Shown here: piece after piece, positions 25,923-62,889 of the stretch
Position numbering within the stretch: the stretch's first letter is position 1
Layout: the number at the start of each line of letters is the position of its first letter
Origin: Marsupella aquatica
Taxonomy: Eukaryota; Plantae; Marchantiophyta
Assembly: GCA_973895155.1 (NCBI GenBank)
Contig: OZ316898.1
Location: forward strand, 3,472,480-3,536,479
Direction of reading: 5' to 3'
DNA: 64,000 nucleotides
Notes under the pieces: model-generated
What the model was told of the DNA's origin: nothing
Databases searched by the model: none
The model's input: only the letters and a program-made list of their open reading frames with translations
Translations under genes and position numbers: made by a program

Positions 25923-28281
25923 CTAAGCATCGTCATCCTTTTTCACTATGAAATTGATCGTGCAATTGTTATAGTTTCCACATAAACTGTTCCCCACCGA
26001 TACACTCTTTGCCTTAGACTTGGCTGCAAAATAACCAGCTAGAGTCGGATTCTTGCTCAATTCCCCAACATAGTCGACTTCATCAAACGTCTTATTCCAC
26101 TCAATAACACGTTTATTCTGCTCGTCTGTCAAGATAGTCCCATCATTTGATACGCTCTTAGATTTCTGTAAGAAAAAACAACTTACATATGTTAAATTTA
26201 GATCATCTGAAAACAAGATTGCACGTAAAAAGCGACAGTGAAAAACCAGAGAAGACATGTACATAGTACTAACTTGAACTTCGATCTTGATCTCCACATC
26301 CTCATCTGCTTTTGAAGATTGGCCCGTATCCTATAATCAGAGTGTGCACATAAAACAAATCAACAAACAAATCACAAATCAACAAACATAAATGACTGAA
26401 ACATTATGCACAAGTACATACCTTAGTCAATTCTGGACTGATCGCTACTTGAAGGTTACGCTGTACACTGACTCTATCAATGAGAGGGTTCAATGCTACA
26501 CCACTCCCTGCCACCTTCTCACTGTAGAACTGCTTAGAAACCTCCGTTAGAGCTTTCTCGTAACTCAAGTTAGAGTTACATCCCACTAAGGTTGCAGCGT
26601 CCTGCTTAAGATCTTGGGTCCTATCATATCTCAAGTATCCACTAGTCGTGTGGTGCCCGGTCACAAGCATGCCAACTTCGTCAGGAACGCCTTTTGCTGC
26701 CATACGCGTTATTAGAGTCGCCCGACCACTCTTATTAGTAAACAAATCTTTAGGAAGCCCTACCAGCTGTAACATGTTATTGAGCATATGCCCTGTGCGA
26801 TCCTGTGCTACTTTGTGGCATTTGTTATACCAAACATTCCCTGCAGGGTTAGTAATAGGTTGCATGACAAGATCCTGCTTCTTGCATTCCTGGGCTGGAG
26901 CCATATGACGTAGATACTGTTTCACGCAAAGAATGAAATCAGCCTCGAAGCTGTGGAAAGCGTTACGAAATTGGTGTTCTGAATATCGGTCCAATGTCAT
27001 GCTGTTATTCTTCGATTCTCTTTCTTCGAATCTGTAAATCAAAAAAACTCTCAAAAGATTAGCAATTACTGACTATTGTTGAAAGATTACGCAAGTCCCG
27101 TGTCTACAGCTGCGACAAGGGTTGAGGACATTATTTCAGCCATATGACGGAAACATGGGTGGAACAAATACAGAAATTTACAGGGGCCATTACCGCACGT
27201 ATTCTTTCCCCTCTTTCGTACTCTCCACGCGTATGTCATTCCTCTGCAAGAGCCAGAGCTCTTTACCACCCCGGATCCCTAGACGACACAAGAAGTAAAA
27301 TGCCAGACGTTTCTGGCAGCCATGTGCACTACTAATCTGGTGATCAATGTTGGCTAGTATTGCTTGCTCCATCTCCTCCGTAATGGTCTCTACCTGCATT
27401 ACATAAACAAACAATGAATAACGTCAATCTTGAACACTAATAAATTCAAACACAAAGAAACACAAAAGCAACAGAAATAACATTGTACACACCTTCTTCC
27501 GTTTCTTATTTTTGCCTTCTCGAGAAGCTTTCTTGATAGCAGCCCGCAAGACCATACGTGTCTTTGAAAAGGCAACATGTGTTTTAATGTTAAATGTTGT
27601 TGTGTCGATTAGATTCCCTTCCCCTCTAAGAGATCTAAGTTCACTTGACCGTTTGATTAACCGGTTGAATCCATTGCACATGTTCATCAAGGTAGCACTG
27701 GGGTAATCTTGGCCATTCACTTTCACTGCCCTACTAAACAAATCGCTGAATAGCTCATCCAGGAGTTGCAATGATAGGTCGCCGAGGGATACAGACATAT
27801 CCCACCCCTTAGCTGCCCGAAGAGAGTTTGCTCATTTCAGAGCCCACTGATCGTTACGTTCTGAAGCTTGCCTCTCCTCACCTTTACCAGCATCATGAAG
27901 CGTCTTATCTGGAACCGCCCTTAAGCCTGGTATGGTAACTTCCAAAGATGACACTTCCCCCTGAGGTCCGACATTATCTATGGCCACATGAACAGGATGA
28001 CTACCAGGAACTTCACAAGCAACAGGAGCATCATCCTCGCTCTCAGCATGAGGAAAATTACTAAGAGTATTGCACACAAACGAATCATCAACAAGACTTT
28101 CTAGACTAGGCAGCTGAAGGTCCTCAATTTCATCAAAAAATAAAAAGTCATTCTCGTCTTCCTCTCCATCTTCGGGACTCACTCCAATTACAGCCCCCTG
28201 GCATTCTGTCATCTCGACTTGCAAAGACGCAGTGATTATTGAAAATGAGGTCAGCGGATATAAACTATCAAGGTCCGTCAT
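25923..28281 (-). pseudogene. Spliced Crypton/DUF3504-type tyrosine recombinase with one premature TGA. Exons approx 28281(or 28212)-27493, 27393-27194, 27031-26422, 26330-26274, 26165-25923
   Basis: N-terminal core-binding-like LDELFSDLFSRAVKVNGQDYPSATLMNMCNGFNRLI. Catalytic motifs LGIRGGKE (R), ESKNN (K), FTNKSGRAT (K/H-x-x-R), LVTGH (H), GYLRYD (Y). C-terminal NNCTINF motif. Four GT-AG introns with compatible phases; in-frame TGA at 27832-27834. Confidence 0.85.
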
Positions 28282-29059
28282 AGCAAAGACCTCTAAACCG
28301 AAATGCAAGGAACATTCCGCATGTATAAAGGACCTGTCCATCTTGAACGCAACGTAAGTTGTCCCTGCTGATTTCCCCGCTCGTCCGTTTGAAATCCTGT
28401 CACACACAGAGGATCAATGAGCAGCGCCTGTCCACTTGCGTGCAAACTAATCCCTGGATAAGAAATTTCAAAATAAAGAAAACACAACCGCGCCATTGAA
28501 TCGGTTTGAATGACAACATCCCACAACAAAGAATCACAGCTCAACATTAACACCATCAACAAAAATCAGAGCAGAAATCAGTAGCTCCCGCGCCCTCCCA
28601 AGAAAGCAAAAGTTGAATCCGTCGAATAAGCGTCTTCGTCAGAAATCCAATTGATTTGAATGGCAGCATCCCATAGCAACGAAATGGCAATTGATTTGAA
28701 TGGCAGCATCCCATAGCATCCCATCGCCATCAACAACACGCGATCAGAGCAAAGCTCAGTAGCTCTAGCGCCCTCCCCCGCAAGTGCAATCCGTCGAATG
28801 AGCACTTTCATCAACTTTGCATTGTATTTACGTTTGATGCGCCGCTCCCATTGGCTGCACTGGTGATTGCCGGTAAACTGCAGACTAAAACCTGATTACG
28901 CACGTTAATCAGGATTTAGCACCCCTGTTACCGGGATTAACCGGGGCTCACAAGTTACTCCCGACACGCTCCCGGCTTCCGCCGGTCGCGGGTCGGTCGT
29001 AACTTGGTCGCCCCGTTACTCCCTGGTAACAGGCGACTAAAGCCTGATTATCCTATACA

Positions 29060-29840
29060 TAACTTTTGTACCAAACAAAGGTTACTAGTAAGTAACAATT
29101 TATATTACATGCGGCTATTCTCCGTAACTTTGTGCCCCTAAATTTCGAGTTGGATGACCATTTTGGGGACAAAAAGTGAGCACAAAAACCAATGTCTAGG
29201 TTTGGGTTCTGGTCATAACCTTGGAACCAGATATTTGAAAATGCTTGCCGATTGCCACCCATCAGTCTGCCCCCTCATTCCAAACTCAGGTCACAGCCTA
29301 CTGTGGTAACCCTTGCCCACACGTCGATTACTCTAGATGTAACTTTTGTGCAGAACAAGGTTACCAGTGGGAAACCGATTCTAGTCCATACTCATATTCT
29401 CAAAATCTTGTACTTAAAATTTATAGTCTGGTACTTTTAAGGGAAAACTTTGCACACCAAAGTTGATGTTTGAGGGGTTCTGGTCTAGAACCTTGTAACC
29501 AGAATATTTGAAAAGGCCTGCTAGTTGCTGGTTCTCACATTTGGGACACATTGTACAACCTTGTGAATCCTGCCCATACTTCTGTTATTCTAATAGGGAA
29601 CTTTTGTATGGAACAAAGGTTATGAGTGGGTCACCATTTCTGTTCCTTGTTGCTAGTCTCATGGGCTCGTGCTATAAAGTTTTTAGTTGGTAATGTACTT
29701 CCAGACCACAACCCACATGAACCTCTGTTCCGAAAGGGATATGTTTAGCCTAGAACCCTGTGTCTTGAATGTGAGAACAAGACCGACCAATGGTTTATGA
29801 ACAGCTGGCCCACACCTAGATTATCCTATGCATCCACCAA
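29060..29840. repeat. Units 2-4 of the palindromic-site repeat array (sites at 29060-29084, 29340-29363, 29598-29622)
   Basis: TAACTTTTG-TACCAAA-CAAAGGTTA; TAACTTTTG-TGCAGAA-CAAGGTTA; GAACTTTTG-TATGGAA-CAAAGGTTA. Each is followed by homologous unit sequence. Confidence 0.8.
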
Positions 29841-30636
29841 GAAGGGTAGCAATCCCACACCCTCCCAAGTCCATCTTGTGTGGATTTACTGACGGTGGTC
29901 AACTCAACCGCCACTATCCATTTCTAAAACTATAGGACATTATAGTATAGTATAACTAGCCCAATGTCTGTGCGTTGCACTAAAGACGTTGAGATGAGAA
30001 AAGATATGGAGATGAGCAAGAAGAGAAACCATGGCCAGGTGAGAAAAATATGTAACAATCAAAAACAGGCAAGGAGAGAAAGAGAGTGAAGGAAAGAAGT
30101 TGTGATGAGATAAATATGTCAAGGTGAGAAAAGGGTGGCAAGCTGAGAAAAAGATGATAAGAAATCAATGTGAGAAAATGTCGAGGTGAGATAAAGATGT
30201 TAATGTGAAAAAAAATGTCAAGATGAGAAAACAATGTCAAGGTAAAGTTGTTGAGGAGAGATAAATATGTAAAGATTAGCCCAATGCTTGTGCGTTGCAC
30301 AAAAGATGTTGAGGTGAAAAAATATGTCAAGGTGAAGAAAAGATATCAATGTCAAAAAGTTCACGATGAGAGAAAAAGATGTCAATATGAAGAAAACATG
30401 TTGGTGTGAAAAAAGTTGTTGATGTCGTGACATATAGTATCGTAGTCATAGTGTATCGAAAACATACAAAGCACTGGCAATGCACATGTGCAAGCTGCTA
30501 GCAACCAACATGCATAGAAAAAGTCTCATCACATTTACAAGTGCCAAGAAAAAGCAAATGAGGTGGTATGTACGTAGTGGAGGTGTAAACCTTTGTATCC
30601 CCCCAGACCACAGCCAAAAGGAGGGCTGAAGAAAAT

Positions 30637-30800
30637 TCAGGTAGCATGCGAAGCACAGGAAGGGCAAAACCATAACCCTTCTGGCACCTGGGTAAGTTCA
30701 GGCCGAAGGCAGAAAAGATGGTACCCTCCATTGCAATTGTCACACAGCAGCATCTGGTCAGCATCGTCAATTCGCAAACATACTTTGCAAGGGTAGTCCA
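30637..30800 (-). pseudogene. PHD finger at the integrase C-terminus
   Basis: CKVC...LLCDNCNGGYHLFC...VPEGLWFCPSC is a C4HC3 pattern with the conserved W. Confidence 0.92.
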
Positions 30801-32120
30801 TAGGTGGAATCCAGGTAGAAGTCACAATGGTGGGATCCAGGTTAGGTAGATGACAAGGGGCGCAATTCTTGGCATTATCAGCAATTATGCGCCCATCTGC
30901 CCCTTGTAACTCTAGCACTCCAGACGGTCGAATAGCTTTAACCCTGAGAATAGTACGACTAGTAGAGGTGTCCAGGGTGTCGTTAGCTTGCCGTTGCAAG
31001 TACACAAAATCTCCCACATCAAACTTCCTGACCTTGGGCTGAAAAGTGCCCCCTCGTGTGTGTGCATAACGCAGTGTGTCTCTGTGCTGTGCAATGGCCA
31101 AATTCTCCATGGCCATGGGCATAACCCTCCTGAATAGGGCAGCCCTCTCGGAGATCACATCAGACCAAGTCACAGCTAAATCCAAGTCCACCACCTAAAG
31201 CATGTGAGCAGCAATAGCAGAAGGTGGAATTGGGTGACGACCAAACAGCAAGAAGTAGGGAGAAAAGTTAGACAGTGATGCATGTCTAGACATCCTATAC
31301 CCCATGGCAATGTAGGGAAGGCCAGGTCCCAATCCTCCTTGTTTTTGGTGAGGCAGATGTTCCAAAGGCCCTTCTTGCATGTCTGAACCATGCGCTCTGC
31401 CAAGCCATCTGCCTGTGGGTGATCTCGTGATGTCCGGCGATGATCAATGAGGGCCTGATCAAGCAGCTCCTGGAACTCTCCTCTAAACTTTGAGCCCTGG
31501 TCAGTGAGACATTGTGCACAAGCTCCAAAGTGACTGAGAACTTGTTGCAGGAATGCATGGCTGGTGCTACGGGAGGTCTTATCCGGCAATGCCACAAGTT
31601 CTGTCCACTTGGAGAAATGCTCTATCATGATCATGATGTAGAGATTACCCCGAGATGTGAGGGGCAATTCTCCAGCCAAATCACATGACCAATGATAAAA
31701 CATGCCCTGAATAGGGAGTGGATGAAGTGTGGGTTGCCGAGATGTGAAAGAAGTCCTTACCCTATCACACTGCTCACACCGGGCAATAACATCTCGAACC
31801 TGGCCATGCATGCCTCTCCAATGATAATGGGGGACCAAGAGGCTATAAGTCCTCTTAACACCAAAATGACCAAGCTCATAATGTACCTTACGGATAAGGC
31901 CAACCCTCTCATGAATGGGTGGAACCACCACTTCCCTGTCTGGCAAGCAGCGCACAAGATGATCTCCCTTCCACAAGTAGCGCTTGGACCTTTGCTGAAT
32001 TCGGTCTCTCTGGGCAGCGGTAACATGGGTGGGGTACTCCCCATGCTGCAGAAATCTCAGAGTGTCGTTGTCCCCCCATATGTCTACCACAGGTTGGTCA
32101 ACAACGTAGCATGGCAGCAA
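30800..32120 (-). pseudogene. Retroviral-type DDE integrase (frameshifted)
   Basis: HYELGHFG...CEQC zinc-binding HHCC; WSCDL, LTDQG, DGLAERMV; C-terminal FDVGDFVYL. Confidence 0.93.
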
Positions 32121-32199
32121 AGCAAGATAAGTAGATGTATGAAATGTAGGCAGGATGGAAACCTGGTCAAAATCCTGCCGTGCATCTGAGGAATCATCA

Positions 32200-33620
32200 G
32201 AGGCAATCTAAGGGCTACGGGACATAGTGTCAGCATTTTGATGTGTCACACCAGGCCTATGAATTACCTCAAAATCATACTCCTAGAGTATGAGCGCCCA
32301 ATGAGCAAGCTTGCCAGTAAGCTTGTCGTTGGTCATCAACCACTTCAAGGGCTGGTGGTCGGTGTAGAGAACAAACCTGGTCCCATAGAGGTAGGGCCTG
32401 TAATGTATGACAGCCCACACAACAGCAAGGCATTCACCCTCATAAGAAGAATGATGAATCTCTGCCTGATTGTTGCTCCTGGATGCATAGGCAATGACGT
32501 ACTCTTTACCTTCCTCATCATGCTGGCCCAGAATGGCACCAATCCCAAGGGCACTCCAATCTGTGTGTAACACAAAGACCTTGCTGAAATCAGGTCTTCT
32601 TAGCACCGGGTATTCTGAGAGCTTCTCCTTCAAAGCGGCAAATGCTGCCTCAGCATCTGTACTCCATGTCCAAGTCACATTCTTTTTTAACAAAGCATAC
32701 AATGGGTGTGCAATGGAGCTGAAATCTTTGATGTAGATCCGGTAATAATTGCACAACCCAATAAAACTCCTCAAAGTGTGAACATCGGTAGGAGTCTGCG
32801 GGCATTTCCAAGATGGATACCACCTTGGCCCAGTGAGCCATGGTTCCATTTGGAAGAATGCGGTGCCCAAGGTATACTATTGATCTGACAACAAATTCAC
32901 ACTTCTTGGGGTGTATCTTTAGGTTCACCTTCTTAAGCCTCATGAATAGCTCCTCAAGGTCAAGTAGATGTTGGTCAAATCCTTTGTTGTGGACCAACAC
33001 TCATCAATGTAGCATTTCAGAAACTCAACACCTTGAAGAACCTGGTCCATGACTCTTTGAAAGAATATGGGCGCATTCTTCAAGCCAAATGGCATCACCA
33101 ACCACTCCCATAGTTGGTTACTACCATGGAAAGTTGTTTTCTTGCGGTCCTTTGTAAGCAACAAAATCTGGTTAAAGCCTTGCCTTAGATCCACAAGAGT
33201 GAAGATGTCTGAGTCTCCAATGCTGTCAAATAGCTCTTCTGGCCGCGGCATGGTACCTGTCCTGGGGTGTGACCAGGTTCAATGGCCTGTAGTCTCCACA
33301 CATGCGCTTCTCTGTCCACAATCCACTGGAATCCTTCTTTGCTGGCATCACTGTAGCTGCTGCAAAATCTGATGTAGATGGCTGAATAAGACCAGCTTCA
33401 TAGAGCTCTTGGCACCGTCCTCTCATCCACCAGTTGCCACTCATGCTTACTCAAACGGTGTCTTTGGCTAAAGATAGGTGTTTCATCAGCCAACTCAATG
33501 GAGAACTGCATGGTCTTGCACTTACCCAAGTCTTTCATAGAGAAAGCAAACACGTTCTCATGCTTGAGGAGCAAATTCAACAACTGGTCCTTCTGTCTTT
33601 TACTCAGGTGGTTGCCCATG
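32200..33620 (-). pseudogene. Reverse transcriptase and RNase H (several frameshifts and stops)
   Basis: KRMCGDYRPLN, DLRQGFNQI, VMPFGLKNAP, CYID, KKCEF, YLGH, RSFIGLCNYYR, LHTDWSALGIGAILGQ, YASR, EGECLAVVWAV, LYTDHQPL. Confidence 0.95.
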
Positions 33621-33703
33621 ATGAATGTATAGTTGGCAACACTAGGAATAGGACCTGATGTACTCGTGCTTGAAGAGCCAGAAGTGCCAGCCTCTCCATT
33701 GTC

Positions 33704-33990
33704 CTCGAGGGGTTAATTAAGTGTATATTTTGGGGTACCACGTGCGATCCTAGCATAATATAAATAGACCTATTTTATAAAGAAAATATTCCAAAAATAT
33801 TCTTCATTTTCAATATTAATAACCTATTTTACTTTATAAAAGGTATATATTAGAGAATATTCTATAAACATAAGTTTCTAATACCTTCTTTTGCCTCCCA
33901 CGTTTTTAAAAAATTTAGTTAATTTCTAGCAAAAATACATATTTTGGATCGCACGTGGTTCCTAAGATTTTTGATAGTCAACCCCCCGAG
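33704..33990. mobile_element. 287-bp MITE with 8-bp TSD (hAT-like TSD length), copy 1
   Basis: TIRs CTCGAGGGGTTAA / TCAACCCCCCGAG; TSD CCATTGTC at 33696-33703 and 33991-33998; AT-rich interior; second copy at 52195. Confidence 0.92.
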
Positions 33991-34269
33991 CCATTGTCCA
34001 AGCTGCTAGCATGCTGTTGATAAGGTGATGCGGCCTCTCCAAGGCCTATTGTATCTATTACTCTGGTCTGATCCACACCATGAAACTCAGAAATAATATC
34101 AGCCACATTACAAGGGACCTCCTCCCCCTAACACTTGGACTGAAGCAGTGAGTGTTGAATAGAGGTAAGTGCACTTGGTCTGGATGCCATGTAGCAGCAC
34201 CATGGAGTGGTAGGGCTGGAACTCCTGATGCTGGATGAATGGACATCTGAAAAAGCTAGGATGCAAGTG

Positions 34270-35205
34270 ACCAGAAGCCAAGTGAGAGCATTAAGATCCA
34301 TTACCCTGCCAAGTAAAGCATTCCTGGCTAGCCTCGTGATTTTGGTGTGGCCTGTAGTATCGGGTTGGAAGCCCATAGCCCGTTCTCTCTCCTCAGGACT
34401 AGGTTCATCCCATGTACCAATAGAATGTCAATAAACCAGGCCAGGACCATCACCCTTAAAAGCATGTGCACCTGGAAAGGACACAAATGTAGGCCAAGCA
34501 ACACGGGGCTGTCCAATGGTATTGGCTGGATACCAAGGTGCTGGCTCTTGCCGTGTAACTGATTGGCAAGAATTGTAAGGATCCAAAATCTGGTCCACTA
34601 TGAGGTTAGTGTCCCTGGATGTGTGGTGAAGAGCTAACTCCAGCAAGGAAGGTGGTGCAAGGTTAGTCCAAAAGTTACGAAGACGATGTGCATAAGAACC
34701 ACAATGCACTGCATCAATGAGAAGGGGTGGTCCCAAGTAGTGCTGGACCACACTGAAAATCCTCTTTGACCTATGGACGCTGGTCAAACTGAGATGGGGT
34801 ATTCTCAATGATATAACCAACAGCGAGGTAAAGGGATTGAGCCCAGGTGAGAACCTGAACCAATGCTGTGAAAAGGCCAGAATGAGAATCATGCAATCCA
34901 ACACCGTGACCAGCAGCTGAAAACCCTTGGCATTCCCAACTAGCTATGATAAAATCAAGGGAGCTAAGTGCCGGTGTTGGACAAGCTGGATATCTGGAGG
35001 GAAGAAAGAAAATGTAGACTTCCATGAACTATGTGGAAACTACTGGGGAAATTGCTCTGAAAATTCCAACAGACGGGATTCAGCCACTTGCCTTGCACCT
35101 GGATCAATGTCCACGTAGATGTATTGCTTCACCACCATGCCAGACAGTAGGAGAGCTTCCAGGCCTGTAGAAATGCCACCAAAAAGCTCAAGCAATGTAA
35201 GGCCA
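34270..35205 (-). pseudogene. C5 cytosine DNA methyltransferase domain inside the retroelement polyprotein, between protease and RT
   Basis: Motif I LELFGGISTGLEAL; II YVDID; IV LDFIIASWECQGFSAAG (catalytic Cys kept); V DSHSGLF; VI YIIENT; VIII DAVHCGSYAHRLRNFWTN; IX EPSPEERERAMGF; X LLGRVMD. All are in canonical order across three frames. Confidence 0.9.
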
Positions 35206-35539
35206 TCCGGAGGAGGAGTCCATGTAACTGGTGCGCTCAAGATTGGGGCTATTGGTTGTCCATTGTGCTGCCCAAGGTCCTCAAATTTGTGTAATGCAGC
35301 CACCAAAGGTCCATGGGCTGCTTGGAGCCGTTGTACCACCTCTGGTTGATGATCCACGTTGATGGAAAGTGCTGCTATATGTGTAGCAGCATGTGTAGCA
35401 ACCACCTCATCATCATCCTCCTCAATCCAATCCTGCAATGGGTGGTTGATGGAGGTAGCTGTGTGCACTGCTTTCAACACACAGTGGTGAGCCATAGGTG
35501 TATGAGCACCATGCAAATCAAGTGGAATATAGCCCAAGT

Positions 35540-35900
35540 GTGAGCCATCCGTATGCCAATCAACTCTATAGTATGCATGCTCATGCCAGTTGTCAATGGT
35601 AAAACCTGGTGGGAACAAAGCCTCCTGGCCAATGAGCATATCATACGTAGTGGCATTGGTAACTAAACATCTGACTGGGAAATGCAATTCCTGATCTGTA
35701 CCTCCATTAAAAGTGAGAGTGAGTAAAGTAGAACTCTCACCCAGCACATCCTCCACAGTGCCACTAGCAGTCCGAATGTGTCACCTGGATTGTTGTAAAT
35801 GATCAGTCAGCAGTCTCATCTTCTTGGCAAACTGAATGCCCAATATCACTGGTTGAGCGCCTGTGTCTAGCATGACCACCTGAGGAGTGTGACCCTCCAA
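35540..35900 (-). pseudogene. Retropepsin-like aspartic protease
   Basis: VVMLDTGAQPVILG and YDMLIGQEAL. Confidence 0.85.
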
Positions 35901-38318
35901 CTTGACCGCCGAATTCCTGTTGTCAACAATGGCAATGGTGGTGGAAACTAAAGTCTTGTCGCTAGGCACCACTTTTGGCAAATGATGAGGTACCTTGTGA
36001 AGGGAGTTAGTGTCCACAATCTTTCCACTCAACAGCATAGCCAAGAAAGATGGAGCAGCATGACCAGAATCAAGTGTAGCTCTAGTCACACAATCTGCAG
36101 CAATACTATCATCTCTACCACTAGAAATTGGTACTGGTATAGCCAAACCAGTGGAAGCATGTAATGGAGAAGAAGAAAGTCCAGTATGTATAGGAGATTG
36201 GACCTCCAAAACCGGTGGCATAGGGGCTGATGAAGAATGCAGTGAGCCCTCTAGCGCTCTCATGACAACTCTAGCATCCAGCTGTAAGTCATGGCAACTG
36301 AAAAGTGGAATTGTAAGAATCCTTTGTGCCATATCGGAGGTGAAATGCTCAAGCAGCTCAGGAGAAACAACTCCATGTGAAATATCAGCAGCACCTGGTG
36401 GAATGGATGTAGTTGCAGCTCCCTCCCCCCTCGCCAACAAGGTGCGCTCTTCAGCAAGCGTGAGTGGCTGAAAAGATTGGGGCATGACAGCCCAAGCTCC
36501 CCTAGCTCTAGTCATAGGATCGGCAGCAAGACCATCAGCCTGTACAATGCGGCGTGTGGGAACAGTACGGGAGGCAGCACTAGCCTGCTGGTAAGCAAGA
36601 TAGGATGGGCAGAATGAATCTGAAAATTCTGCTGTAAGGCCAGGCTGTGTAGCAGAGGACAACACACATTCACCCATATGAGCATCAAATGGCAAGCCAT
36701 AGAAAGAGCGAGGTAGAGGTTCTGAACTATCAGTGGTGCCTGGGCCAGGGATGGGTTGCACGTGACCAGCTGGTTGAGAAGGACCAGCAGAGGCAGTTGA
36801 CTTGCCTTTGATGTGGGCAAGTTGGGCACGTAGGGACTCAACCTCATGAGTCAGAGATTGGAGTTGAGTTGCCTGTGCGTTGTGAGCCTCCTTCTGAGCT
36901 GGTTGCTTCTGTTGCTGCTTGGGCGATTTGTTGGCACCGGGTGCTTTGCCACTTGAAGGAGGAGCAACTGAGGCAATAGAAGTCCTCCTAGCTGGTGGGG
37001 GAGTGAAAGTAGGAAGAGGATGAGGGGCCTGCTGTCTTAGCTGCTTCCTCTCTGGGAATTTGGCAAAACAAACTGCCTCCAAGTGACCCACTTTCCCGCA
37101 AAAATCACAAGATAGGTCCTCAGCAACAATATCACATTCATTAGCCTTGTGATTGGGTTACCACAGTAGTTGCAAGATGGTAGCATAAAAGCAGCATGGG
37201 CTGGCTTGGTCTTGGAACCATACTGTGGCACATGGGAAGGGGTGGCCAGTGTAGGGGCAGCAGCCTGGTACCTGGATCGCGATGGACGCGCAATACTGGC
37301 CTCATAATGTGCATGGGCCAACTCAAGTTTCTCAGCAGTGTCATAGACATTAAGCAGGGTGTAGCTATCTCCAAACTCTGAGAATACTTGCTGCAACACT
37401 TGCCAATGGAGAGTTGGTGTGCCCTCCAATGCGCGAAGATAGCGATGAGCAGCTTCCAGGTCAGTGATGCTCTGGGTGTCCTCCTACAGCTTGAGAAGCC
37501 GGCGATACATCATCTTTAATGTTTCATCGCGCTGCCTCACAAAGGTGGCCAACTGCATGATTTTGTCAGCACTCTTGATTGGGAATTCCAATTCAAGAAC
37601 CTGGAAAAACTCAGCCACTGGATCAGCAAAGGCAGGGGAATCAATGGTGGGAGAAATGCCTGATGTAGCTTGTGCCAAGACAGTGGGAGTAACTGGTGTA
37701 GTGGTGGGAATTGGAGTAGGAGGGGATATATGTGGCAGGAGCAGCAACATGGGCTGCAATGGCATTCTGTAATGCCAGTTGTAAGGCAGCCGCAATTGCA
37801 GTGGCATAGGCAGGGTTAGGCAATTGTGTGACAGCAAGCAGCCATTGAGAATGCTGCTCATACACATCCAAAGCCTCGTGGTGCACATACCTGGCTAGCT
37901 ACTTAAATGCAAAAGCATTTGTGAAATTGCTGCCATACTTCAACTCCAATTCATAAATGACAATGTAGAAAGTGGATTTGAACTCACGCAAAGAAATAGT
38001 GCCTGGCCGCCTGCTGAAGCGTTTAATGCGTCTAGATGAGTGGCTAACGTCCATGCTGTATGTTGGTGAAGTAGGAACAACCACGGATGCAGAAGGGGTA
38101 AATGGCAATGAAGTTATAACAGGCTTTGGAGTAGTGGTGAAGCGACCGGCAAATTGAGCAGAAGGATTGCGTGGTGTGGGTGCTATTGCTGTTTGCGGAC
38201 GTCGTTGAAATTGCCGAGATTCCAATGAAATTGGCACCAATGGTCGTGGATCACTCCGTAAATGGTACCTGGGTGTCGGTGGCGATGTGCTGCTACCTCC
38301 CGGCTTGTCTGCTGACAT
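35900..38318 (-). pseudogene. Gag-like region with two CCHC zinc knuckles (~37066-37174)
   Basis: CNYCGNPxHKANEC (frameshifted) and CDFCGKVGHLEAVC; RQRDETLKMMYRRL MHR-like segment; probable ATG at 38318. Confidence 0.8.
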
Positions 38319-38571
38319 ACTGTGTTGCAATCCCAAATGTACCGACAAGGTGCAAATGTGTAAACACATAGAAAAACTGTCACCGTAAAAAAACTGTCGG
38401 AGAAAATTTACTTTTAAAAATGCAAATTTAGCCCCTTGTGCGTGTGCTGATGTATATGCCAAATTGACCGTCTGATGAATATGCCAGGCCCTCAACTTTA
38501 TGCAGATGACACGTGGCGGCAGCAAAGAAATCCGGAAAAATGGGCCCTTAAAAACGTAAACCTAGGGCCCC

Positions 38572-40360
38572 CTTAAGTGTATACATGGGGCCCTTTCAAA
38601 TGTATAAACATGGGGCCCGGTTAAGTGTATACATCGGGCCCCGATGTGGACCCAGGAACTAGCAAGCACGACGGAAAAGAGACCGGGCGCGCGTCGGCAG
38701 CGAAATTGGCCACAAAGGAATCGGCCGAGTGTGTAAACACACTCTGGGCACGGCGCCCTATGCACAGGCAGCCTGCGGAGGCCCTATGCAAGTCGTTGCG
38801 AGGCGGAAGGAAAGACGACTGCCGAAAAGAAAAGAGAGACCCAAAAATAAAAGGCGTATTACGAGGCGAAAAGGAGGCAAGGCAAAAGAAACCGGGCCAA
38901 ACCAGGCCCCCTTAATGGCATGAGCCCTCCCATAGGGCTTCGTGCCCCACCTTAAGAGCTTCCAAAGGGAAGCTACGAGCTCCCCCTCCCCTCCTTAATG
39001 AAATTGGGCCTCGTGCCCTGGTGACAGTATTCCCCAGAGAAGGGAGCCCAGTTTGAAGTGATGGGCAACTTGCCGAGTTGCCCGGCACGTAAACTCGGCA
39101 TTTGCCAGACCAAAATGCCTCTATTTGACGCATATTCAATCTTATTCCCCGGCCCGGCCCAAACTCTTCCCGGCCTTGTCCCGGACGCTACCACCCTTCC
39201 CGGCAACCAGCCCGGCCCGGCCCGGCCCGGCCGGCCCCTCCACGGACCCGGCAACCAGCAGCTGGGGGCGGGAAGGGGCAGGCCGGATCCGGGTCCGGGT
39301 GGGAGGAGGGGAGGGGAGAGCAGGGTCCGGGTGGGGGGAGGGGAGGGGAGGAGGGGAGGGCCGGGTCCAGGTGGGGGGAGGGGAGGGGGGGGGAGGGTGA
39401 GGAGGCCTGGGTCCGGGGAGGGGAGGGGAGGGGAGGGGAGGGCCGGGCCGGGTCCAGGTGAGGGGAGGGTGAGGAGGGCCGGGTGAGGAGGGGAGGCCGG
39501 GACCGGGAGCCGGGGGATGTCCAAGCCGGGACCGCAGGCCGGGAGATGTGGGAGCAGGGACCGCCGGGGGCCGGGGGATGTGCTCGGGCCAGGACCGGGG
39601 ACCGGGGCCGGGACGGAGGAAACAAAAGGGAAACAAGACCGGGTGATGGGGCCGGGAGGTCATGGCCGGGCCAGGCCGGGACCGGGGGAGCGAGACCGGG
39701 AGAGGCCGGGTGTCGACTTGCCGGTTGACGGCCTCGGAAGGGTCTATTTGCCGGGCAAGTCCAAACCGGGGAAGGGAGTCGATGTACTCTCCCCCCTTTC
39801 TTTAATGCTGACAGTGGGCTCCGTGCCCTGCAGGGGGACTCCCGAAGAAGGGAGTCGTATGTGAACTCCTCCTCCCCCTCCTTTTAATGCAACATAGGGC
39901 CTCGTGCCCACTCCTTGCGCTCCTGCCTTGGCCTGGGGCAATAATCTACTCCCGAGTGAGGGAGTTCGAATTGTACTCCCCTTCCCTGCTTTAATTGTTG
40001 CTTAGGGCCTCGTGCCCTCTCCTGCACTCCTGCCTTGGTTCCCCCTCCTCCCTGCTTTAATTACTCCATAGGGCTTCGTGCCCTCCATCCCCTCTTGCTT
40101 GCAGGACAAAAAGTAAGGGAGTCGCTCCCCCTCCCTTGGCTGCTTTAATTGCTGGCACAAATCAAGTTGCAGCTGAAGCGAGGCAGGAGCAATAGAAGTG
40201 AGGCGAGAAAAACAGGCTCGTGGCCCTATGCAGTCGGGAAGTAGTCGCGCGCGGTGGCCGAGGCAGTCCGGTGAGGGTCATGCGGCAGCCGTGGCCGGAA
40301 ATGGCCATAAAAATTAACAAAAAAGGGGCCCGACGGGAGTGTTATGTGTATACACTTAAG
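38572..40360. other. GC/CpG-rich segment in the retroelement 5' leader, bounded by a 14-bp inverted repeat containing TTAA, with a G-run (G-quadruplex-prone) core at ~39260-39500
   Basis: CTTAAGTGTATACA at 38572-38585 and TGTATACACTTAAG at 40347-40360; dense CCGG/GGCC motifs and GGGGAGGGGAGG runs. Confidence 0.55.
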
Positions 40361-43300
40361 TATACACATAACACCACACTAAACCCATAGTTTTGAAGCC
40401 TTGTTCCAATGTCTATCGAGGAAATTGCAACGGCTTAACCAAAAATCATCAAAATTGCCACGAGCAATCTTCTTCCCTGCACCGCTAACTCGACAGTTCT
40501 TGAATAAAAGGCATAAGAGAAACAAGCATACTGAAATCAAATCGAAACCGGCAAGATGCCAAGATCGGCCGGGAGCATCTAACGAATCACTGTGTGAATC
40601 CTGTGTACGGAACCGACGAGCACTGTCTGAGCTCTGTCAACAGCGATTCAAGAAGAACTAAAAACTAACAAAGAAAGACATGCCCTAAGTAAACAAAGTC
40701 CTGGCGTCTCACTAACAAGCGTGTTTGCTTCAAGAACGCCTGGAATTTTCTATAAGAACATGTCGCTAACTCAAGTAGTACACTAGCCCTAACTACATAC
40801 CTAGCGGGCATGCGAGGGACATGCCGATGTGCACAAGAGACACTGTCCCTCGGCATGACATTGATGAGAGAAAAAGATGTTGAGGCGAATTGAAGAAAAA
40901 GTTGTCAATGAGAGAAAAAGATGTTGAGGTGAGGAAAATAAGACAAAGTGAAAAAAAAATGTTGAGGAGAGAAAGGATGGCAAGATGAGAACTTGGGGAT
41001 ATTACTTCCACAAAATGGCACATCACATGCAATGAAAGATAAGGTCATTTTATTGGTTCTAAGGGAAAATTTAATAATTTTTGCATGAAAGCAATAGGGT
41101 CTTTTAAATTAAATTTTGAGACTTATAAGAACATTAGGGTCATTTTAATCAATTTTTTTGAATATTCTAACTTTTTAGGAGCTAAAAATAATTTTCTTTC
41201 TTACATTTTAGGGGGTCTAAGGCCTAAAAATGTCATAGGTGATGGGGAGGTCTCCATATAGTGAGACCCCCAAGGGTGAGGAAAACAAGTCGAGGAGAGA
41301 AAAGATGTCATGGTGAGGTAAAGAACACAAAAAATGCACATGCATTGCATAGAGGATGTTGAGATGAAGAAAAGATGTTGAAAGGAGAAAAAAATGTGAA
41401 GGTGAGGCAAAGTTGTTGAGCAAACACAAAAATGCAGACAAACTCATTCCCTATGCGCCGCAAAAAAGATGTTGCATAAAAATGTCATTGTTTGATGGTG
41501 TTTGTTATTGTCACAAAAATGCTGGCGTCTTGGTCATTATTATGAACATGTTATTGTTGAGGAGGATGAAGGTGAAAACATGGAGATGCAAAGGTGGGTG
41601 ACAGTGGCCATTACATCATGGAGTTGTAGCATGATCACCCAAAAAAATGATACAATTTTTATTAAAATGAAAATTATTAATATGTTAAATACATGAATAT
41701 ATACACACTTATTTTTTTTTAAATGTGGGGCAGGAAAATACAAAATTATCTCACTTTATCCCCTCCATGTTTTTCCCTACCCTTTTCATTCTCCTCTTCC
41801 TCAGTTTTTGTTCATTTTTTCCTTTATTTGGTCCTCCCCCTTTTATCCTCCATGCCAATTTCTAGCTACCTTCTCCCTCATCTTTGGATAGTGTTTTGTC
41901 TATATCTTTATGAGAGTATAATGATTACCCTTGTAGAGTTGTAATTCCCATGGGAGAGTAAGGAGGACTTTACAAGACGTTGGGGGCACTTGGGAGTTTT
42001 TTTTCACCAAAGCAAACTGGAGGGCCATTGCACACTTGGGAGTTTTTTTCACCAAAGCAAACTGGAGGGCCATTGCACACCCTAACTATAGTGTCAAGGG
42101 GCTAAAAGTATTTTTTGAATCCTTTTATTGCCCCCAAGGTCTTCTAAAGCCAAGTGAAGCCAATGGTGCCAGATTAATTGACTAAAAGACAGATTGAGGA
42201 CCCACTCCACCTGAATGTCACGTAATCTTTGGTTAAAGTCTTTGTAAATGTGAGAAAAGAAGATCTTATGAGGGACTTGTGGGTCCCTTTTTAATGCAAA
42301 TGACTTAAAATAGAATGGACCAGGAGGCCAAAAGAAGAGACCACCAAGAGAGGTAGTCTAAAATCTAGGACAAAAGAGTGCTCCACATAAGCAAAAATTG
42401 GGCCCCACTACATTCCATGTAGGGTTGGTAACAGGTTCGGTTGAAAGTGCCCCAAACGTTTTGTAAAGAAAACAGCAGCAGCTTCTCCCATATGGATGGC
42501 TCTGATCAGATCTTGGAGAAAAAAAATGGGGAAACTGCCCCCAACGTCCCTAAGAACATTCTAGACTTCTAGTGCAATTGTTCTTGTTCTCATGTAGTCT
42601 ATTGCAATGTCATTATGTGTTTATGTGTACCTTGGCCAAGGAACCATAGAGAGTGGAACTATTTCATACATCCCTTCCTATTATTAATTAATAATCAACG
42701 GTTTCACAAAATCCCCCAAATGATCTATCGGCTTTCGTCATTCAATCCTGCCCAAAATACATTTTGTAACTGAAAGAAGGACAAAAATGAGTGGGATTCA
42801 ATATTATAGATATAGATTAGAAACATATGTGAATGCGACAACATATGTGAAGGCAAGGCAACAATATGTAAATTTTGTGATGTGGTTGGTGAGATATGTT
42901 ATGTGTGATCCCGGCCATACAATTGTTGTGATCATGTTCAGTAATTTGTGCGTTGCACATAGAAATTGGAGATACGAGATAGCGGCCATTGCATCATAGA
43001 GTCCAAGCTAGCACAATCAAGTGACTCGGAAAACATGCTATTTTAAGTTTTACATTTTTAAAGAAATAAGTATTTTCTACATTCTATTTATATTCAAAAG
43101 TCTCTCAAATTAATTATTCAAGCTTTGTAAATATAAATATAAATATAAATATAAATAAATTAAATTAAATTTAAAAAAATTAATCTCGGGCAGGTGTGGG
43201 CAGGCTAAAGGGAAACTTGAGCAGGCATCTGTTTATGTGGGGTGTATGGATAGATCTGTCAGTGTAAAAAAAACAATGTTCTGATGAAGGTTCAATATTG

Positions 43301-44988
43301 GTTCCCACTTTTTATCAGTTTACAAACGCGCAATCCCCACTTGTTTGGGGGGATAGGATATTATTTATTAGTGGCAGTGACAAAAAGCCTTTGTTGTGGA
43401 CTAGGTAAATAAATATTTTGAGTTGAACCAAATGAATGATTCTTTTGTGTTTTGTTGCCAATTGCAATGGTGCTACCACTGTCAACAACATTGTCTGGAA
43501 AATTAGATGGAATGGTCATGAAGGGCAAGGATGCTATCACACAACAAGGGAGAATTGGGTAGCAAGGGACAAAATTGGGCAGCTAGCAAAAAGGGATAAG
43601 GGAAAGAGACTAGGCAAAATGGGGGCAACACAAAAATTTGGACATCAAGTAAATTTGACATTAAAAAGACAACGAACATATGTCAGAAATGACATCTCTA
43701 AGGCACCTCATTACCAGGTGTGAAAATAACCTGGGTTGGGAGAGAAACAAACCAAAGCTTTTCAGTTAATTGCCATTTTTAGTAACTTTTGAAACAAAGT
43801 CAAAAAGTCAATTTTATTATGGGTCATTCGGAAAAGTAGACTTTGCACTAATACATCACTGCACCATCTGTGCTAGTTAATATTTTATATTGCACACTAG
43901 GACTAGTAATCAACTTGTTAATACCTAATGGGCACTTTGGGTGCATGTTACATTTGACATACATTTTCACTGCTCGGTCTCACAAATTAAATAAGAAAAT
44001 TCTTAGAAGCACTCTCAATACACTCATAATTTTGTAAATTAGGGCTTTATCCCTGGTTGAGGCTTGTAGAAAATTGAGGCTTCACACCAAGTGACTAATT
44101 GATCCTATCATGTCATCCTCGTGGTCAATAGCTACAGGCCCGTGAACAAAGCACACCTTTCACCTACCATCATTTGTAGGATAGTTGAATTGACGTCCCT
44201 TCCTTGTGATCAAGAAGTCAAAACAACAATCTAGAATATTCCTAGCCACAAATTTCACTCAGGCCATCATATCATCCAGAAAACATAATTTGTTCAAAGG
44301 GTTCATACGAAGCTCAAATCTTTGTCTTATTTTGAATCTCAGAAAATTGGTCATTAAAGAGACTCTCTGATTAAGACATGATAGGTTCCATTAATGTGAC
44401 CAGGGGCCTCATATTGGTGAGTTTACCTACAAAATGAATCATCAAAACTATGACCTATGTTCATTCTTAAACAATTGTGGCAAATTGCCTTCCATTTAAA
44501 CATGATAAACAAGCGACCTTTGTCGAATCTTCAATTGAGCTAACGAGTTGTGTCTCTTCAACCAACCAATGATAAAATGAATAAAACTCATTTGTGTGAC
44601 CAACATCCATTTTTTGGAATAGTCAACCCTTGCTGCTCTTGGGAATAGTATGTGGTAGATTGTGCTAGGCACCGGGCTAGGCATTTACTCTTGGGTCTAA
44701 AGATACTATAGTATTGTAGTCTAACCATACTCAAGTACTTAATTAAGGTTAGAGACTAGGTTAGAGATACTACTACTATATTCACTAGCATGACTTAGCT
44801 TGTGTGTGAACTTAAAGCCTCATTGCTATGGAGCCATCAAGAGATAGGGAGAGCTTAGTCTATTGACAATTGGTATGAATGATGAGCCTACTAGAGCAAA
44901 ACTTTCTTGTGTGTTCCTGTGGTTGCACACTATAGATTACATTGGACACATTTTATTTTATTAGAATTCAAAGCTCAGGACCTTCCTT

Positions 44989-45738
44989 TGTGGTGTGTTT
45001 TCCAACCCTCTAACCACCAAAACTACCGTCAACGTGCCGTCTAATACTGATTTTTGGCTTGCTAATAGCCGCTAACCTTTTGCTTTTCCTCAGCAAGCCA
45101 AAAATCAGTATTTCTATATATTGTTGGCTTGCTGAGGAAAACTTATGTGTTAAGTCTCTTTAGCCACCCATGTTGGAGCAATTCTTTCATTGGACTTGTG
45201 AGCAACTGTTGTGCCAACACTTTACTTTCCTCTTTGACTTAATCAAGTATTCCGCCCCGGGAATATACCCATTGGCTTAACTTCTCAAGCCCGCTAAGGG
45301 TATTCCTCATACTACACAACTCACCCTTCACCAAAAAGCACTCTCAATATCTCACGTTTGGTGGGGCAAATTAGACTCAAGGCGATGTGACGAGTCATAC
45401 TTTGCTCACTAGTTCTACTCATACTAGTGCAGGAAATAACTCACATTAATTCTTGGTCCAGGAAATACTTGCAAGGACTTGCCAATTAACTAAACCAACA
45501 CAGGCAGCTAACTCAACTCAAGTGATTACTCATAAATTCAAGACACTGCTGTTTACTAATACCAAACATTCAAGATTTAGCCAAGAGTTTTCCTAACTCA
45601 AGTGATTCAGATCATTGATGCACAAAAGGCTCAACTAATAAAAAGACCCAACATCCACACTACAAAGGTTTTTATCCTTGCATCAATTCAGCTGGGGGTT
45701 CAGTCCCAATGATCCGAGAACATCCAAACTACCTAACA
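44989..45738. repeat. LTR-like dispersed repeat, copy 1
   Basis: Starts TGTGGTGTGTTTT and is co-linear with 48771-49482 (ctctaaccac..aaactacc, actttgctcactagttc, ttagccaagag, atgatccg). No TSD found. Confidence 0.6.
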
Positions 45739-46151
45739 TGCATCAAAAGGCTCAACTTGGAACAATGAGGCCTCATTCTCCAAGATATGTTACCCCTTCC
45801 TTGGCACAACAAGTTTAGTGTCTAGCTAGTTGAATGATTGATTAAGTTGAAAATTAAAAGAATTGTGGTGGGACTATGAATCGTGAAGAAACTTATATCA
45901 AGATCGGTAAAGTAAATGCAAAAGAGTAGGTTAGGGACAACTATCTCCCCAGCCTGGATTCATGAGAACTCACCTGTTCTTTTGCTATTCAAGCTAAATG
46001 ATGCATTACTTTACATTTTGAAAGAAATCTTCATCCTAAAGGTCGTATCTATAATTATATGACATTATCGGACGGAAGCTTCTTATGATGCTAATGATTT
46101 GATTACCATTTTTGCATGTTTACAATATTTATATATATATATATATACTAT

Positions 46152-62000: not shown

Positions 62001-62889
62001 GTAGTGGGCCTTTCATGTACTTCTCACATAGTGACTTTATATACTGACACCCAAGATCATGAACTTAGGAAACAAAAGTGGGAAAGTTAAAAGTAAAGCC
62101 ACCCTTAGCTTTCCCTTTCCCGTGGATCAAGTGGAGTTCATTTCGCGGTCTGTCTTGATCGAGTGACAACTCACTGAACGCATACTAGTGTCAGCCTGCC
62201 AAGTCATTGTGGAGGTGGAAACAATCCAACCAACCAACCTACTTACATTACTTTGATTTTGTTGCAGAAAGACAAGGAGGCCACCATGCATTAAAAGGAA
62301 TTTCTAATGCAACAAAGAGAAATGACCAACTCCATGCAAAATTGAAATAATTATCAATTTTGAAATCTATGATTAAAAAATATGTGGTCTGCTATACTCA
62401 AATTTATGCCCGAATGGACCCCCATATTTGTCAAAATGCTCATAGAGACTTTTCTGATCCAATGGACTGCAGTGCAACATTGTCTTCTGTATATATTACA
62501 CCAATATATGAGTGAAATGTGACAAGAAATGTGACAGTCAATTTTGGAAATTAGTCGGTCTCTCAATTCTCAATGAAATTGACAGTATTAAGCTCATTGG
62601 AAAGATCGATCTTTCCAAGCCCTTCCAACAGCCCTTCATAACAAACCCCCTTAAATCAGATTTCATTATTTAGATATAGGGGGATATTGAATGCCATTGT
62701 TAGTGGTTAGAATGCTTTAGGAAGTACAAAGTGTGCATACTACGTGATGGAGTGATGCTAATAAATTCACGACTCTCTCATCATGAAAACTAAAGATATT
62801 AGACCAGTTGGTTGGAAAAATCTTTTTAAGCGGTCTCTAAAGAACCCAAGAATATCCACTTCATTCATTATCAAGGGTTTTATTGGCCA

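Follow-up and report, generated by a model that had tools for sequence, protein, structure and literature searches.

Layout, ends and decay of the inserted element

The window (i.e. the whole 64,000-nt stretch of DNA that was analysed) contains at 30423-40860 an inserted element of 10,438 nt (~8.35 kb minus two nested insertions), which was delimited by means of an empty-site paralog and which reads, on the minus strand (as do all coding, terminal and target-site features described below), in the order gag-protease-DNMT-RT-RNaseH-integrase-PHD, where DNMT denotes a DNMT3-like C5 cytosine methyltransferase and RT a reverse transcriptase. The gag region (35901-38318), drawn from the ORF list, is spread over several frames, starts near 38318 and has a CCHC-like knuckle near 37050-37091; it is supported by tblastn with the gag of locus L001 and by a nucleotide match to locus L007 (7471-8421). 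The aspartic protease (35560-35900; DTG at 35859-35867, in-frame stop at 35781-35783) gives a weak Pfam Asp_protease_2 match and aligns to the relatives P0158 and P0004, both of whose proteases pass Pfam. The reverse transcriptase and RNase H (32286-33676; Pfam RVT_1 1.7e-13, RT_RNaseH 1.2e-34), split over several frames, are collinear with L004 and L007, and the integrase (31179-32120) comprises an H2C2 zinc domain (31752-31919; PF17921 1.1e-13) and an rve core (31416-31700; PF00665 2e-12). Within a single ORF (30637-31194), a C-terminal tail (30790-31194; 71% identical to L004 and ~80% to Calypogeia fissa P0172) joins this catalytic core to a C4HC3 PHD finger (30655-30789; PF00628 1.6e-12), which is found at the integrase end of every scanned polyprotein that reaches that far. 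Both the Gypsy assignment and the PHD finger after the integrase, put forward by a first-pass annotation of this DNA, were recovered by Pfam, with RVT_1, RT_RNaseH, RT_RNaseH_2, Integrase_H2C2 and rve following each other in the Ty3/Gypsy-type pol order and the DNMT sitting between protease and RT.

On the coding strand the element begins with TGTCATGCC... and terminates in ...GTCACGACA (i.e. TG...CA ends), and it is bounded by a 4-bp target-site duplication (3' side 30419-30422, TCAA on the coding strand; 5' side 40861-40864), the flanks rejoining with a 4-nt overlap on an uninterrupted paralogous array at 63020-63060 (aligned paralog: 62889-63293). The insertion target is a tandem array of a 19-mer, and an independent full copy with the same ends (L007 6017-14476) also resides in a tandem array (anecdotal at n=2). 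No direct repeat was found between the ends of either copy, both being devoid of the flanking long terminal repeats (LTRs) of Ty3/Gypsy elements. A repeat search and blastn (26000-30700 against 38000-46000) returned the target-site 19-mer array as the sole match, and the reading of this array as diverged LTRs was ruled out by the alignment of the uninterrupted paralog. Furthermore, a DIRS-like layout (A, B repeats) is absent from both copies, in which neither split repeats nor a copy of the end junction in the interior were found, and no primer-binding site for initiator tRNA-Met (≤2 mismatches) was detected in the whole element. The 3' untranslated end (30423-30636) carries a G-run (30594-30609, ~170 nt before the terminus) that is conserved, together with the terminal ...CACGACA, in L004 and L007, and that possibly represents a polypurine tract. 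At the 5' terminus a hairpin is predicted (40811-40857; element nt 4-50; fold -23.6 kcal/mol, z -2.3), its basis being two sequences only, of which that of L007 folds alike with another stem sequence (z -2.9). A sibling PHD fragment elsewhere in the window (48002-48397) shows no nucleotide similarity to the element ends.

The copy is dead, as the first-pass annotation had stated: it is a fossil without function, incapable of the activities proposed below. Besides the stop in the protease, in-frame stops are present at 35040-35042, 34428-34430, 32283-32285 and 32208-32210, and at least 11 frame changes occur near 34964, 34756, 34254, 34123, 33415, 33251, 33000, 32796, 32473, 31300 and 31115 (with further ones in gag). 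A nested MITE of 287 bp (33704-33990), which ends in terminal inverted repeats, is flanked by an 8-bp duplication (33696-33703 / 33991-33998); a second copy of the MITE, 89.5% identical, lies at 52195-52481, and sister-copy contigs in public runs skip exactly 295 nt at the MITE site. The 5' untranslated region houses an additional, GC-rich insertion of ~1.8 kb (38572-40360), which is delimited by a perfect 14-nt inverted repeat (TIR) and differs in composition from the element (GC 0.62 and CpG o/e 0.63, versus an element CpG o/e of 0.28-0.30). The changes private to the window copy are mostly C>T, 13 of 27 private C>T being in CHG context, and this excess, together with the CpG depletion, suggests that the copy was methylated and then decayed.

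The methyltransferase domain and its reading frame

A C5 methyltransferase had initially been proposed between protease and RT, in the frame of the former, and its motifs I to X were all located (34263-35255), in unpermuted order: motif I at 35163-35189, motif IV (Trp-Glu-Cys-Gln) around the catalytic Cys codon (34930-34932), motif VI (ENT) at 34804-34806, motif VIII at 34659-34688, motif IX at 34368-34394 and motif X at 34296-34316, with two stops and two frame changes inside the domain and one more frame change on its C-terminal border. A tblastn match of the relative P0004 spans 35747-34305 (2e-71), and phmmer with a 115-aa piece (34431-34775, minus strand) retrieved 466 clusters at E≤1e-3 (233 at ≤1e-10, best 2e-35). 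Since this single piece matched no solved structure, a family profile was needed, which scored best on DNMT3A (9e-23), followed by DNMT3B (1.5e-20), DRM (1.5e-13) and M.HhaI (7e-10), in agreement with the DNMT3-type resemblance noted earlier; an ESM Atlas search gave generic DNA-methylase clusters only. Stop-broken proteins were searched as separate pieces (joined by X for trees only), and of the two accessory domains that the first-pass annotation wished to see checked by Pfam, the PHD finger was recognised and DNA_methylase fell narrowly short, the motif IV-VI piece of the window copy reaching 21.7 bits where the cut-off is 22. Pfam scans of the window copy and the scanned relatives revealed neither a PWWP nor an ADD domain. 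Judged by its sequence, the domain is genuine and DNMT3-like.

Pro stands at motif IV in nearly all C5 methyltransferases, and Pro-Cys is what the DNMT3 family would lead one to expect; the Glu-Cys of the window copy, already flagged as unusual by the first-pass annotation, is a family trait (46 of 76 members have Glu ahead of the catalytic Cys, and only 22 have Pro), and it could modify DNA methylation or do away with it. The catalytic Cys itself is kept in all 76 members, the Glu of the ENV motif in 78/78 and the two Arg of RxR in 77/78 and 76/78, and the motif I glycines are nearly invariant. In comparison with L004, the DNMT core has a pN of 0.20-0.24 and a pS of 0.66-0.76 (similar to RT and integrase), values which, as silent sites are saturated and a proper dN/dS is not computable, set only an upper bound of ~0.2-0.35 on the ratio. 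Neither neutral evolution nor loss of the catalytic Cys, both named beforehand as grounds for rejection, was seen, and these conservation data show the DNMT to be a family component kept under constraint.

The DNMT shares the protease frame from 35756 to 35043 and continues into RT once the MITE and the frame changes are allowed for; with the MITE and one duplication removed, the DNMT-side and RT-side frames are in phase. Among relatives, protease and DNMT are joined in single ORFs (P0158, P0163 and P0296), and stop-free ORFs run from DNMT into RT in L004 (7010-8230) and in P0311-P0316 (74-84% identity). A leaky stop between DNMT and RT (TAG at 34128-34130, frame 2) was considered and ruled out, as comparison with L004 shows that the true reading frame changes at this point; given the continuous DNMT-RT ORFs in L004 and P0311-P0316, the subfamily of the window copy is without one. 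Neither sister copies lacking the DNMT nor a consistent separation of protease-DNMT and DNMT-RT into different frames was encountered.

Relatives, arrangements and alternative readings

The protease-DNMT-RT order recurs at four other loci from different samples (L001, L004, L006 and L007), which speaks against the one-off capture that the first-pass annotation had named as a possible refutation. The intact paralogs sought were not seen among the fetched loci (L001, L004 and L007 are all broken), and four public runs contain thousands of contig pieces, many ≥99% identical, that are free of the MITE and of the stops and indels of the window copy, the DNMT part being present at a copy number as high as that of RT. 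Among named proteins the nearest are those of the liverwort Calypogeia fissa, with ~80% identity over integrase-PHD and 66% over RT; it is on these that the link of the lineage to land plants rests. The matches of the DNMT include the charophyte Closterium, no Klebsormidium sequence was identified among them, and all 150 of the 150 listed matches of the DNMT piece that were checked are transposon-type, with none from a host DNMT3.

In most database relatives, some of them chlorophyte proteins, the DNMT is found between RNase H and integrase. Such polyproteins (e.g. the pol of Scenedesmus sp. PABB004, KAF8056149.1 = P0085) possess a DNMT of the same family, at 40-47% identity and with motif variants in common, together with a like integrase-PHD tail and an RT of a sister lineage, but have the enzyme after RNase H instead of before RT; their named members are chlorophyte (Scenedesmus, and Chromochloris by DNMT-tree placement), and at least one element of this kind (L009-L011) is LTR-like by virtue of a 731-nt direct repeat. 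A single branch parts the two arrangement groups in the RT tree (SH-aLRT 94 and 92), and in the DNMT tree, which is unrooted for lack of a host DNMT3 outgroup, the protease-DNMT-RT rows constitute one group (SH-aLRT 98) set among other rows. Common to both arrangements, and absent from DNMT3A in the profile alignment, are Gly-Trp-Glu-Cys-Gln-Asp at motif IV and a PTLV...S-AFR block; Pro-Cys and Glu-Cys members are present in both groups. The window lineage and its sister group thus differ in where along the polyprotein the enzyme sits.

A one-off origin of the domain, be it a piece of a host DNMT3 or some other element lodged in a Gypsy copy, or an assembly chimera, is exceedingly improbable: although Pfam DNA_methylase stays below threshold on the window copy, which does contain two genuine nested insertions, the sister copies with the same order at four loci refute it, the DNMT is bounded by no duplication or repeat, its frame continues those of protease and RT, relatives have uninterrupted ORFs across both junctions, and the public runs hold it at RT-like numbers. 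We also attach little weight to an independent uptake of DNMT3 by the two arrangement groups (as opposed to a single capture and subsequent move), for which the branch separating them in the RT tree, the unrooted state of the DNMT tree and the documented recurrence of DNMT capture (PMC5890265; bioRxiv 10.64898/2026.05.21.726589) can be adduced; the motif variants and the integrase-PHD tail common to both groups, the position of the protease-DNMT-RT rows as one group amid the others, and the absence of host DNMT3 from the checked matches argue against it.

With regard to function, the domain might be no DNA cytosine methyltransferase and might methylate RNA or act as a DNA- or SAM-binding module only. 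The predominance of Glu before the catalytic Cys would fit this, as would the precedent of SymbioLINE-Dnmt, a retrotransposon DNMT that, according to PMC5890265, left DNA unmethylated in yeast and for which an RNA substrate was suggested; we nonetheless hold it to be quite improbable, in view of the near-invariant Cys, ENV Glu, RxR Arg and motif I glycines, of the mixing of Pro-Cys and Glu-Cys members in both arrangements of one family, and of the closest solved enzymes being true de novo DNA methyltransferases. Slightly less doubtful, and still unlikely, is an action in trans on host chromatin or sister copies instead of the element's own cDNA (e.g. damping transposition and sparing the host), an option listed in the Discussion of PMC5890265. 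The strong CpG depletion of the family (o/e 0.28-0.30) and the mostly C>T private changes imply that the copies are methylated by something, yet host machinery alone accounts for methylated transposons, and the enrichment of private C>T in CHG points to the usual plant chromomethylase context and not to DNMT3.

Proposed roles and known systems

We consider it very probable that 30423-40860 is a decayed member of a Ty3/Gypsy-type family with an in-family DNMT3-like enzyme and a PHD finger. The PHD finger resembles, in sequence, readers of unmethylated H3K4: the nearest solved PHDs (CHD4, WSTF, ATXR5, KDM5 PHD1, BAZ2A/B, BHC80 and AIRE) read H3K4me0 or the unmodified H3 tail (1e-15 to 1e-8), the H3K4me3 reader TAF3 appearing only at 5.5e-6. 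In active members, the integrase-PHD tail would, by analogy with the chromodomains of chromoviruses and with what we judge to be an even chance, tether integration to H3K4-unmethylated nucleosomes, i.e. to silent or repeat chromatin. More tentatively, the DNMT, which immediately precedes RT without a change of frame, may methylate the freshly made cDNA or the newly inserted element, the copy entering the genome already with the methylation pattern of the host; as the element is without LTRs, this step draws on analogy with ordinary LTR elements, and with a polyprotein that is probably cleaved, the enzyme and the reader may also work apart. For the earlier suggestion that the element methylates its own cDNA or insertion site while choosing chromatin via the PHD, which we likewise infer, the one supporting observation is the likeness of the PHD to unmethylated-H3K4 readers. 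A farther-reaching view, to which we assign a low probability, is that the protease-DNMT-RT lineage represents distinct LTR-less, integrase-using land-plant retroelements, which would replicate without terminal repeats (perhaps via the 5' hairpin), with the DNMT, in one piece with RT, methylating nascent cDNA and the integrase-PHD placing it in H3K4-unmethylated chromatin.

Chromodomains at the integrase C-terminus direct integration to heterochromatin. Chromoviruses, Gypsy elements whose integrase bears a chromodomain, share with the window element a histone reader in this position, the reader of the latter being a PHD finger apparently of the unmethylated-H3K4 type, and the RT of the window element is far from that of a chromovirus-like element nested in L004. 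Host DNMT3A/3B, the closest solved catalytic domain to that of the element, combine a de novo methyltransferase with an ADD domain, a zinc finger that reads unmethylated H3K4; in the mobile-element gene, by contrast, the reader is on the integrase at the far polyprotein end, motif IV is Glu-Cys and Pfam scans show no PWWP or ADD. KnitGypsy-Dnmt3 of the charophyte Klebsormidium nitens (de Mendoza et al. 2018, PMC5890265) is a Gypsy-type element described as having an intronless DNMT3-type enzyme within its pol polyprotein, with key catalytic residues kept, with the DNMT under purifying selection and with copies methylated in the host, which are points of likeness. The window element agrees with it in the in-frame DNMT3-type enzyme, the kept catalytic residues and the purifying selection, and differs in being without any repeats, where KnitGypsy-Dnmt3 was drawn with a DIRS-like A-coding-B-A-B layout, and (compared by description) in its PHD finger, which the text of that paper does not mention. 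It also differs in its link to land plants, the paper's text describing a survey of Physcomitrella, Selaginella and angiosperms without such an expansion (PMC5890265). Gypsy-7a_cRei of Chlamydomonas (PMC9940879), an active Gypsy, has a pol annotated with a PHD finger, as in the window element, but ordinary LTRs and no reported DNMT. EpiLTRs (bioRxiv 10.64898/2026.05.21.726589) equally pair DNA methyltransferase and chromatin-reader modules; these retrotransposons of Cymbomonas and Euglena combine a DNMT4-related enzyme, an adenine methylase and a chromodomain, i.e. a different enzyme family and reader.

The sole published Gypsy example is from a charophyte alga, and the kind is now extended to a lineage linked to land plants and present in very many copies, in which the DNMT lies ahead of RT and which is LTR-less yet integrates with target duplication. 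DNA methylation is the main defence of plants against transposons, so a transposon with a de novo methyltransferase of its own inverts the usual picture. Should there be active members in liverworts, they would offer a tractable system, in a plant whose DNMT3 pathway works, in which to ask how methylating DNA benefits a transposon; and if the reading as an LTR-less lineage is true, the element would write its own epigenetic state and pick its own neighbourhood.

Coding layout and identity of the methyltransferase

ORF listing and three-frame translation delineated one retroelement on the minus strand (hereafter the window copy), with coding sequence between about 38318, where gag starts, and the stop at 30637 that follows the PHD finger. 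On this strand, Pfam returned a weak match to an aspartic protease (around DTG 35859-35867), RVT_1 in two pieces, RT_RNaseH (1.2e-34), Integrase_H2C2 (1.1e-13), rve (2e-12) and a PHD finger (1.6e-12). The proposal of the first-pass annotation, namely that a single Gypsy element encodes both a cytosine DNA methyltransferase (DNMT) and a PHD finger, was confirmed as an observation and supported as a reading (Pfam, ORFs, family searches); of the two domains expected in Pfam, the PHD finger was recovered and DNA_methylase, on the piece with motifs IV-VI, scored slightly below threshold (21.7 bits, cut-off 22). The methyltransferase motifs in its list can be recognized, with positions assigned to I, IV, VI, VIII, IX and X, and the start of the domain shares the frame of the protease end, as had been described.

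The longest unbroken piece of the DNMT (34431-34775, minus strand, 115 aa), scored against 1.84 billion representative proteins, matched 466 clusters at E<=1e-3 and 233 at <=1e-10 (top match 2e-35), and the alignment of a database relative (P0004) to the window copy spans 35747-34305 (2e-71). A DNMT profile built from 18 relatives and searched against all solved structures ranked DNMT3A first (8.9e-23), followed by DNMT3B and 3C, plant DRM (1.5e-13) and M.HhaI (7e-10). The domain is thus real, DNMT3-like and unpermuted. A TAG at 34128-34130, within the frame bearing motif X, was rejected as a genuine DNMT/RT stop by comparison with L004 (a JGI metagenome contig with DNMT and RT in a single ORF), which places two shifts of the true frame near 34254 and 34123; the subfamily of the window copy thus has no such stop between the two domains.

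Motif IV usually has the form Pro-Cys. The Trp-Glu-Cys reported in its place is present and is a trait of the family, the residue preceding the catalytic Cys being Glu in 46 of the 76 family members (Pro in 22, Ser in 4, Asp in 3), on which ground decay of the window copy was rejected as its source. Neither loss of the catalytic Cys nor neutral evolution, both raised as possible outcomes in the first-pass annotation, was seen: the Cys is invariant (76/76), the Glu of ENV is retained in 78/78 members and the two Arg of RxR in 77/78 and 76/78, and the DNMT core (window copy versus L004) gave a pN of 0.20-0.24 and a pS of 0.66-0.76 (silent sites saturated), with a similar pattern in RT and integrase. 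Since pN is low where silent sites are saturated, the DNMT domain was maintained by selection during lineage divergence.

Two arrangements and the liverwort relatives

The order protease-DNMT-RT-RNaseH-integrase(-PHD) also occurs in L001 (ENA assembly), L004, L006 and L007/L008 (JGI), sister loci which all carry the DNMT and mark it as a family trait as opposed to a one-off capture. Moreover, ORFs join the protease to the DNMT in three relatives (P0158, P0163 and P0296), and L004, together with many proteins that share 74-84% identity with it, has stop-free ORFs leading from the DNMT into the RT. Among the classified matches of the DNMT piece, the arrangement RT-RNaseH-DNMT-integrase(-PHD) was present in 83 (one named member is a pol protein from Scenedesmus sp. 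PABB004, a chlorophyte), and protease-DNMT or DNMT-RT in only 9; Chromochloris and Closterium also gave DNMT matches.

In the DNMT tree, built without a host DNMT3 outgroup, all protease-DNMT-RT rows fell into a single group (SH-aLRT 98) nested among the other arrangement, and in the RT-RNaseH tree (outgroup: a chromovirus-like element) a single branch splits the two (94 and 92). Both arrangements have the integrase-PHD tail as well as the atypical motif IV, and the simplest reading would be a single capture in a common ancestor with a later move of the DNMT domain. On this unrooted DNMT tree, two separate DNMT captures, one for each arrangement, are an unlikely alternative.

ENA metagenome scaffolds of about 14 kb (L009-L011) contain an element of the other arrangement that looks intact, with ORFs of 1155, 564 and 1774 aa. 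This element is circularly permuted in the assemblies of three samples and has a perfect, LTR-like tandem duplication of 731 nt downstream of pol, a pattern that either a two-LTR junction or head-to-tail copies would be expected to give.

The nearest named proteins to the window copy come from a leafy liverwort and are labelled 'unnamed protein product [Calypogeia fissa]': an integrase-PHD protein of this species (P0172) is 80% identical to the window copy, the locus of that protein (L003) shows 75% DNA identity, and the C. fissa RT (P0385) is the closest row in the RT tree. As the nearest named relatives come from a liverwort, these similarities lend support to a land-plant family. Locus L003 (CBCUJL010000007.1) retains an open integrase-PHD ORF of 501 aa, and the upstream part of the element has been replaced by LINE copies; since these are near-identical and one has an intact 1059-aa ORF, the LINE family looks young.

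Termini, target site and decay

The flanks (29955-30424 and 40863-41474) are the two halves of one 19-mer array, and because an uninterrupted array paralog (63020-63060) rejoins both with a 4-nt overlap, the inserted unit is exactly 30423-40860, with the target site duplication TCAA and TG...CA ends. The target is itself a repeat, in which about 700 nt of unique sequence follow the 19-mer tandem array (29955-30424, 40863-41961), and a second, uninterrupted copy lies near the window end (62889-63950; 41281-41961 versus 63267-63950, 80% identical).

LTRs, split repeats and an internal copy of the end junction were looked for in the window copy and none was found; no LTR was found in the independent full copy L007 (8,460 nt) either. 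L007, which sits inside a tandem array, has its first nine and last nine bases in common with the window copy, conserves the G-run that lies some 170 nt upstream of the 3' end, and is about as long as the window copy less its two nested insertions. Given that L007 has the same ends, a similar length and no LTR, the absence of LTRs seems to be characteristic of the lineage, in contrast to the LTR-like 731-nt repeat of the L009-L011 element. The 5' hairpin of L007 resembles that of the window copy with a different stem sequence: the first 50 nt are predicted to fold in both (window 40811-40857, L007 6020-6066), with a shared stem base and a differing mid-stem, which hints at a conserved terminal structure at the 5' end of the element.

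Contigs from four public runs, aligned on 32600-36600, revealed a highly repeated family (thousands of contig pieces, hundreds of them at least 99% alike). The MITE with its duplication, exactly 295 nt, is absent from some sister contigs, and two stops and eight frame-breaking indels of the window copy differ in them, so that these lesions are private to it or to a few relatives. The earlier verdict of a dead copy (stops, frameshifts, MITE) is borne out, the lesions having been located, and the window copy is a fossil.

The MITE itself (287 bp) occurs twice in the window (33704-33990 and 52195-52481, 89.5% identical) and in many contigs of the public runs; because of its terminal inverted repeats and the 8-bp target duplication at 33704-33990, a hAT-like origin would fit. 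The 5' untranslated region of the element contains a GC-rich insert (38572-40360; about 1.8 kb, GC 0.62), which is bordered by a perfect 14-nt inverted repeat, is rich in G/C-rich short tandem repeats and has no evident coding capacity. Over 32600-36600, the differences of the window copy from nearly all sister contigs are mostly C>T or G>A (of 27 listed sites, 13 in CHG and 4 in CG context), and CpG o/e is 0.28-0.30 inside the element versus 0.47-0.63 in its surroundings; the two together have the appearance of a transposon that was methylated and has undergone deamination.

The PHD finger and comparison with known elements

The closest solved PHD fingers are those of CHD4, WSTF, ATXR5, KDM5 PHD1, BAZ2A/B, BHC80 and AIRE (1e-15 to 1e-8), most of which read the H3 tail with unmethylated K4, and TAF3, an H3K4me3 reader, was matched only at 5.5e-6. 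The PHD occupies the position on the integrase at which chromoviruses bear a chromodomain, and we infer that it may tether the integrase to chromatin with unmethylated H3K4. The location of the two full copies (window copy and L007) within tandem arrays agrees with such tethering, in two cases only. A role for the DNMT in the element is likewise one that we infer. Another integrase-PHD element is present in the window as a fragment (47210-48397). Its PHD tail (48002-48397, minus strand) is 40% identical to protein P0075 and is followed by a pair of direct repeats of 140 nt (47210-47349 and 47684-47819) that are 94% identical and lie 474 nt apart, a layout compatible with the B-A-B portion of a DIRS-like structure.

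DNMT-carrying retrotransposons have been reported from dinoflagellates and Klebsormidium, with no such expansion in the surveyed land plants (Physcomitrella, Selaginella, angiosperms), and the Klebsormidium element was drawn with DIRS-like repeats (de Mendoza et al. 2018, PMC5890265), whereas the window copy has neither split repeats nor LTRs. A 2026 preprint names 'streptophytes (Gypsy-DNMT3)' and describes methylase-plus-chromodomain elements, which are unrelated (bioRxiv 10.64898/2026.05.21.726589), and a Gypsy pol with an annotated PHD is known in Chlamydomonas (PMC9940879). Searches of open-access full texts found no description of elements of this type from liverworts or any other land plant. 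Within the known Gypsy-DNMT3 kind, the family is characterized by the link to land plants, the position of the DNMT before the RT, the PHD finger on the integrase and the absence of LTRs.
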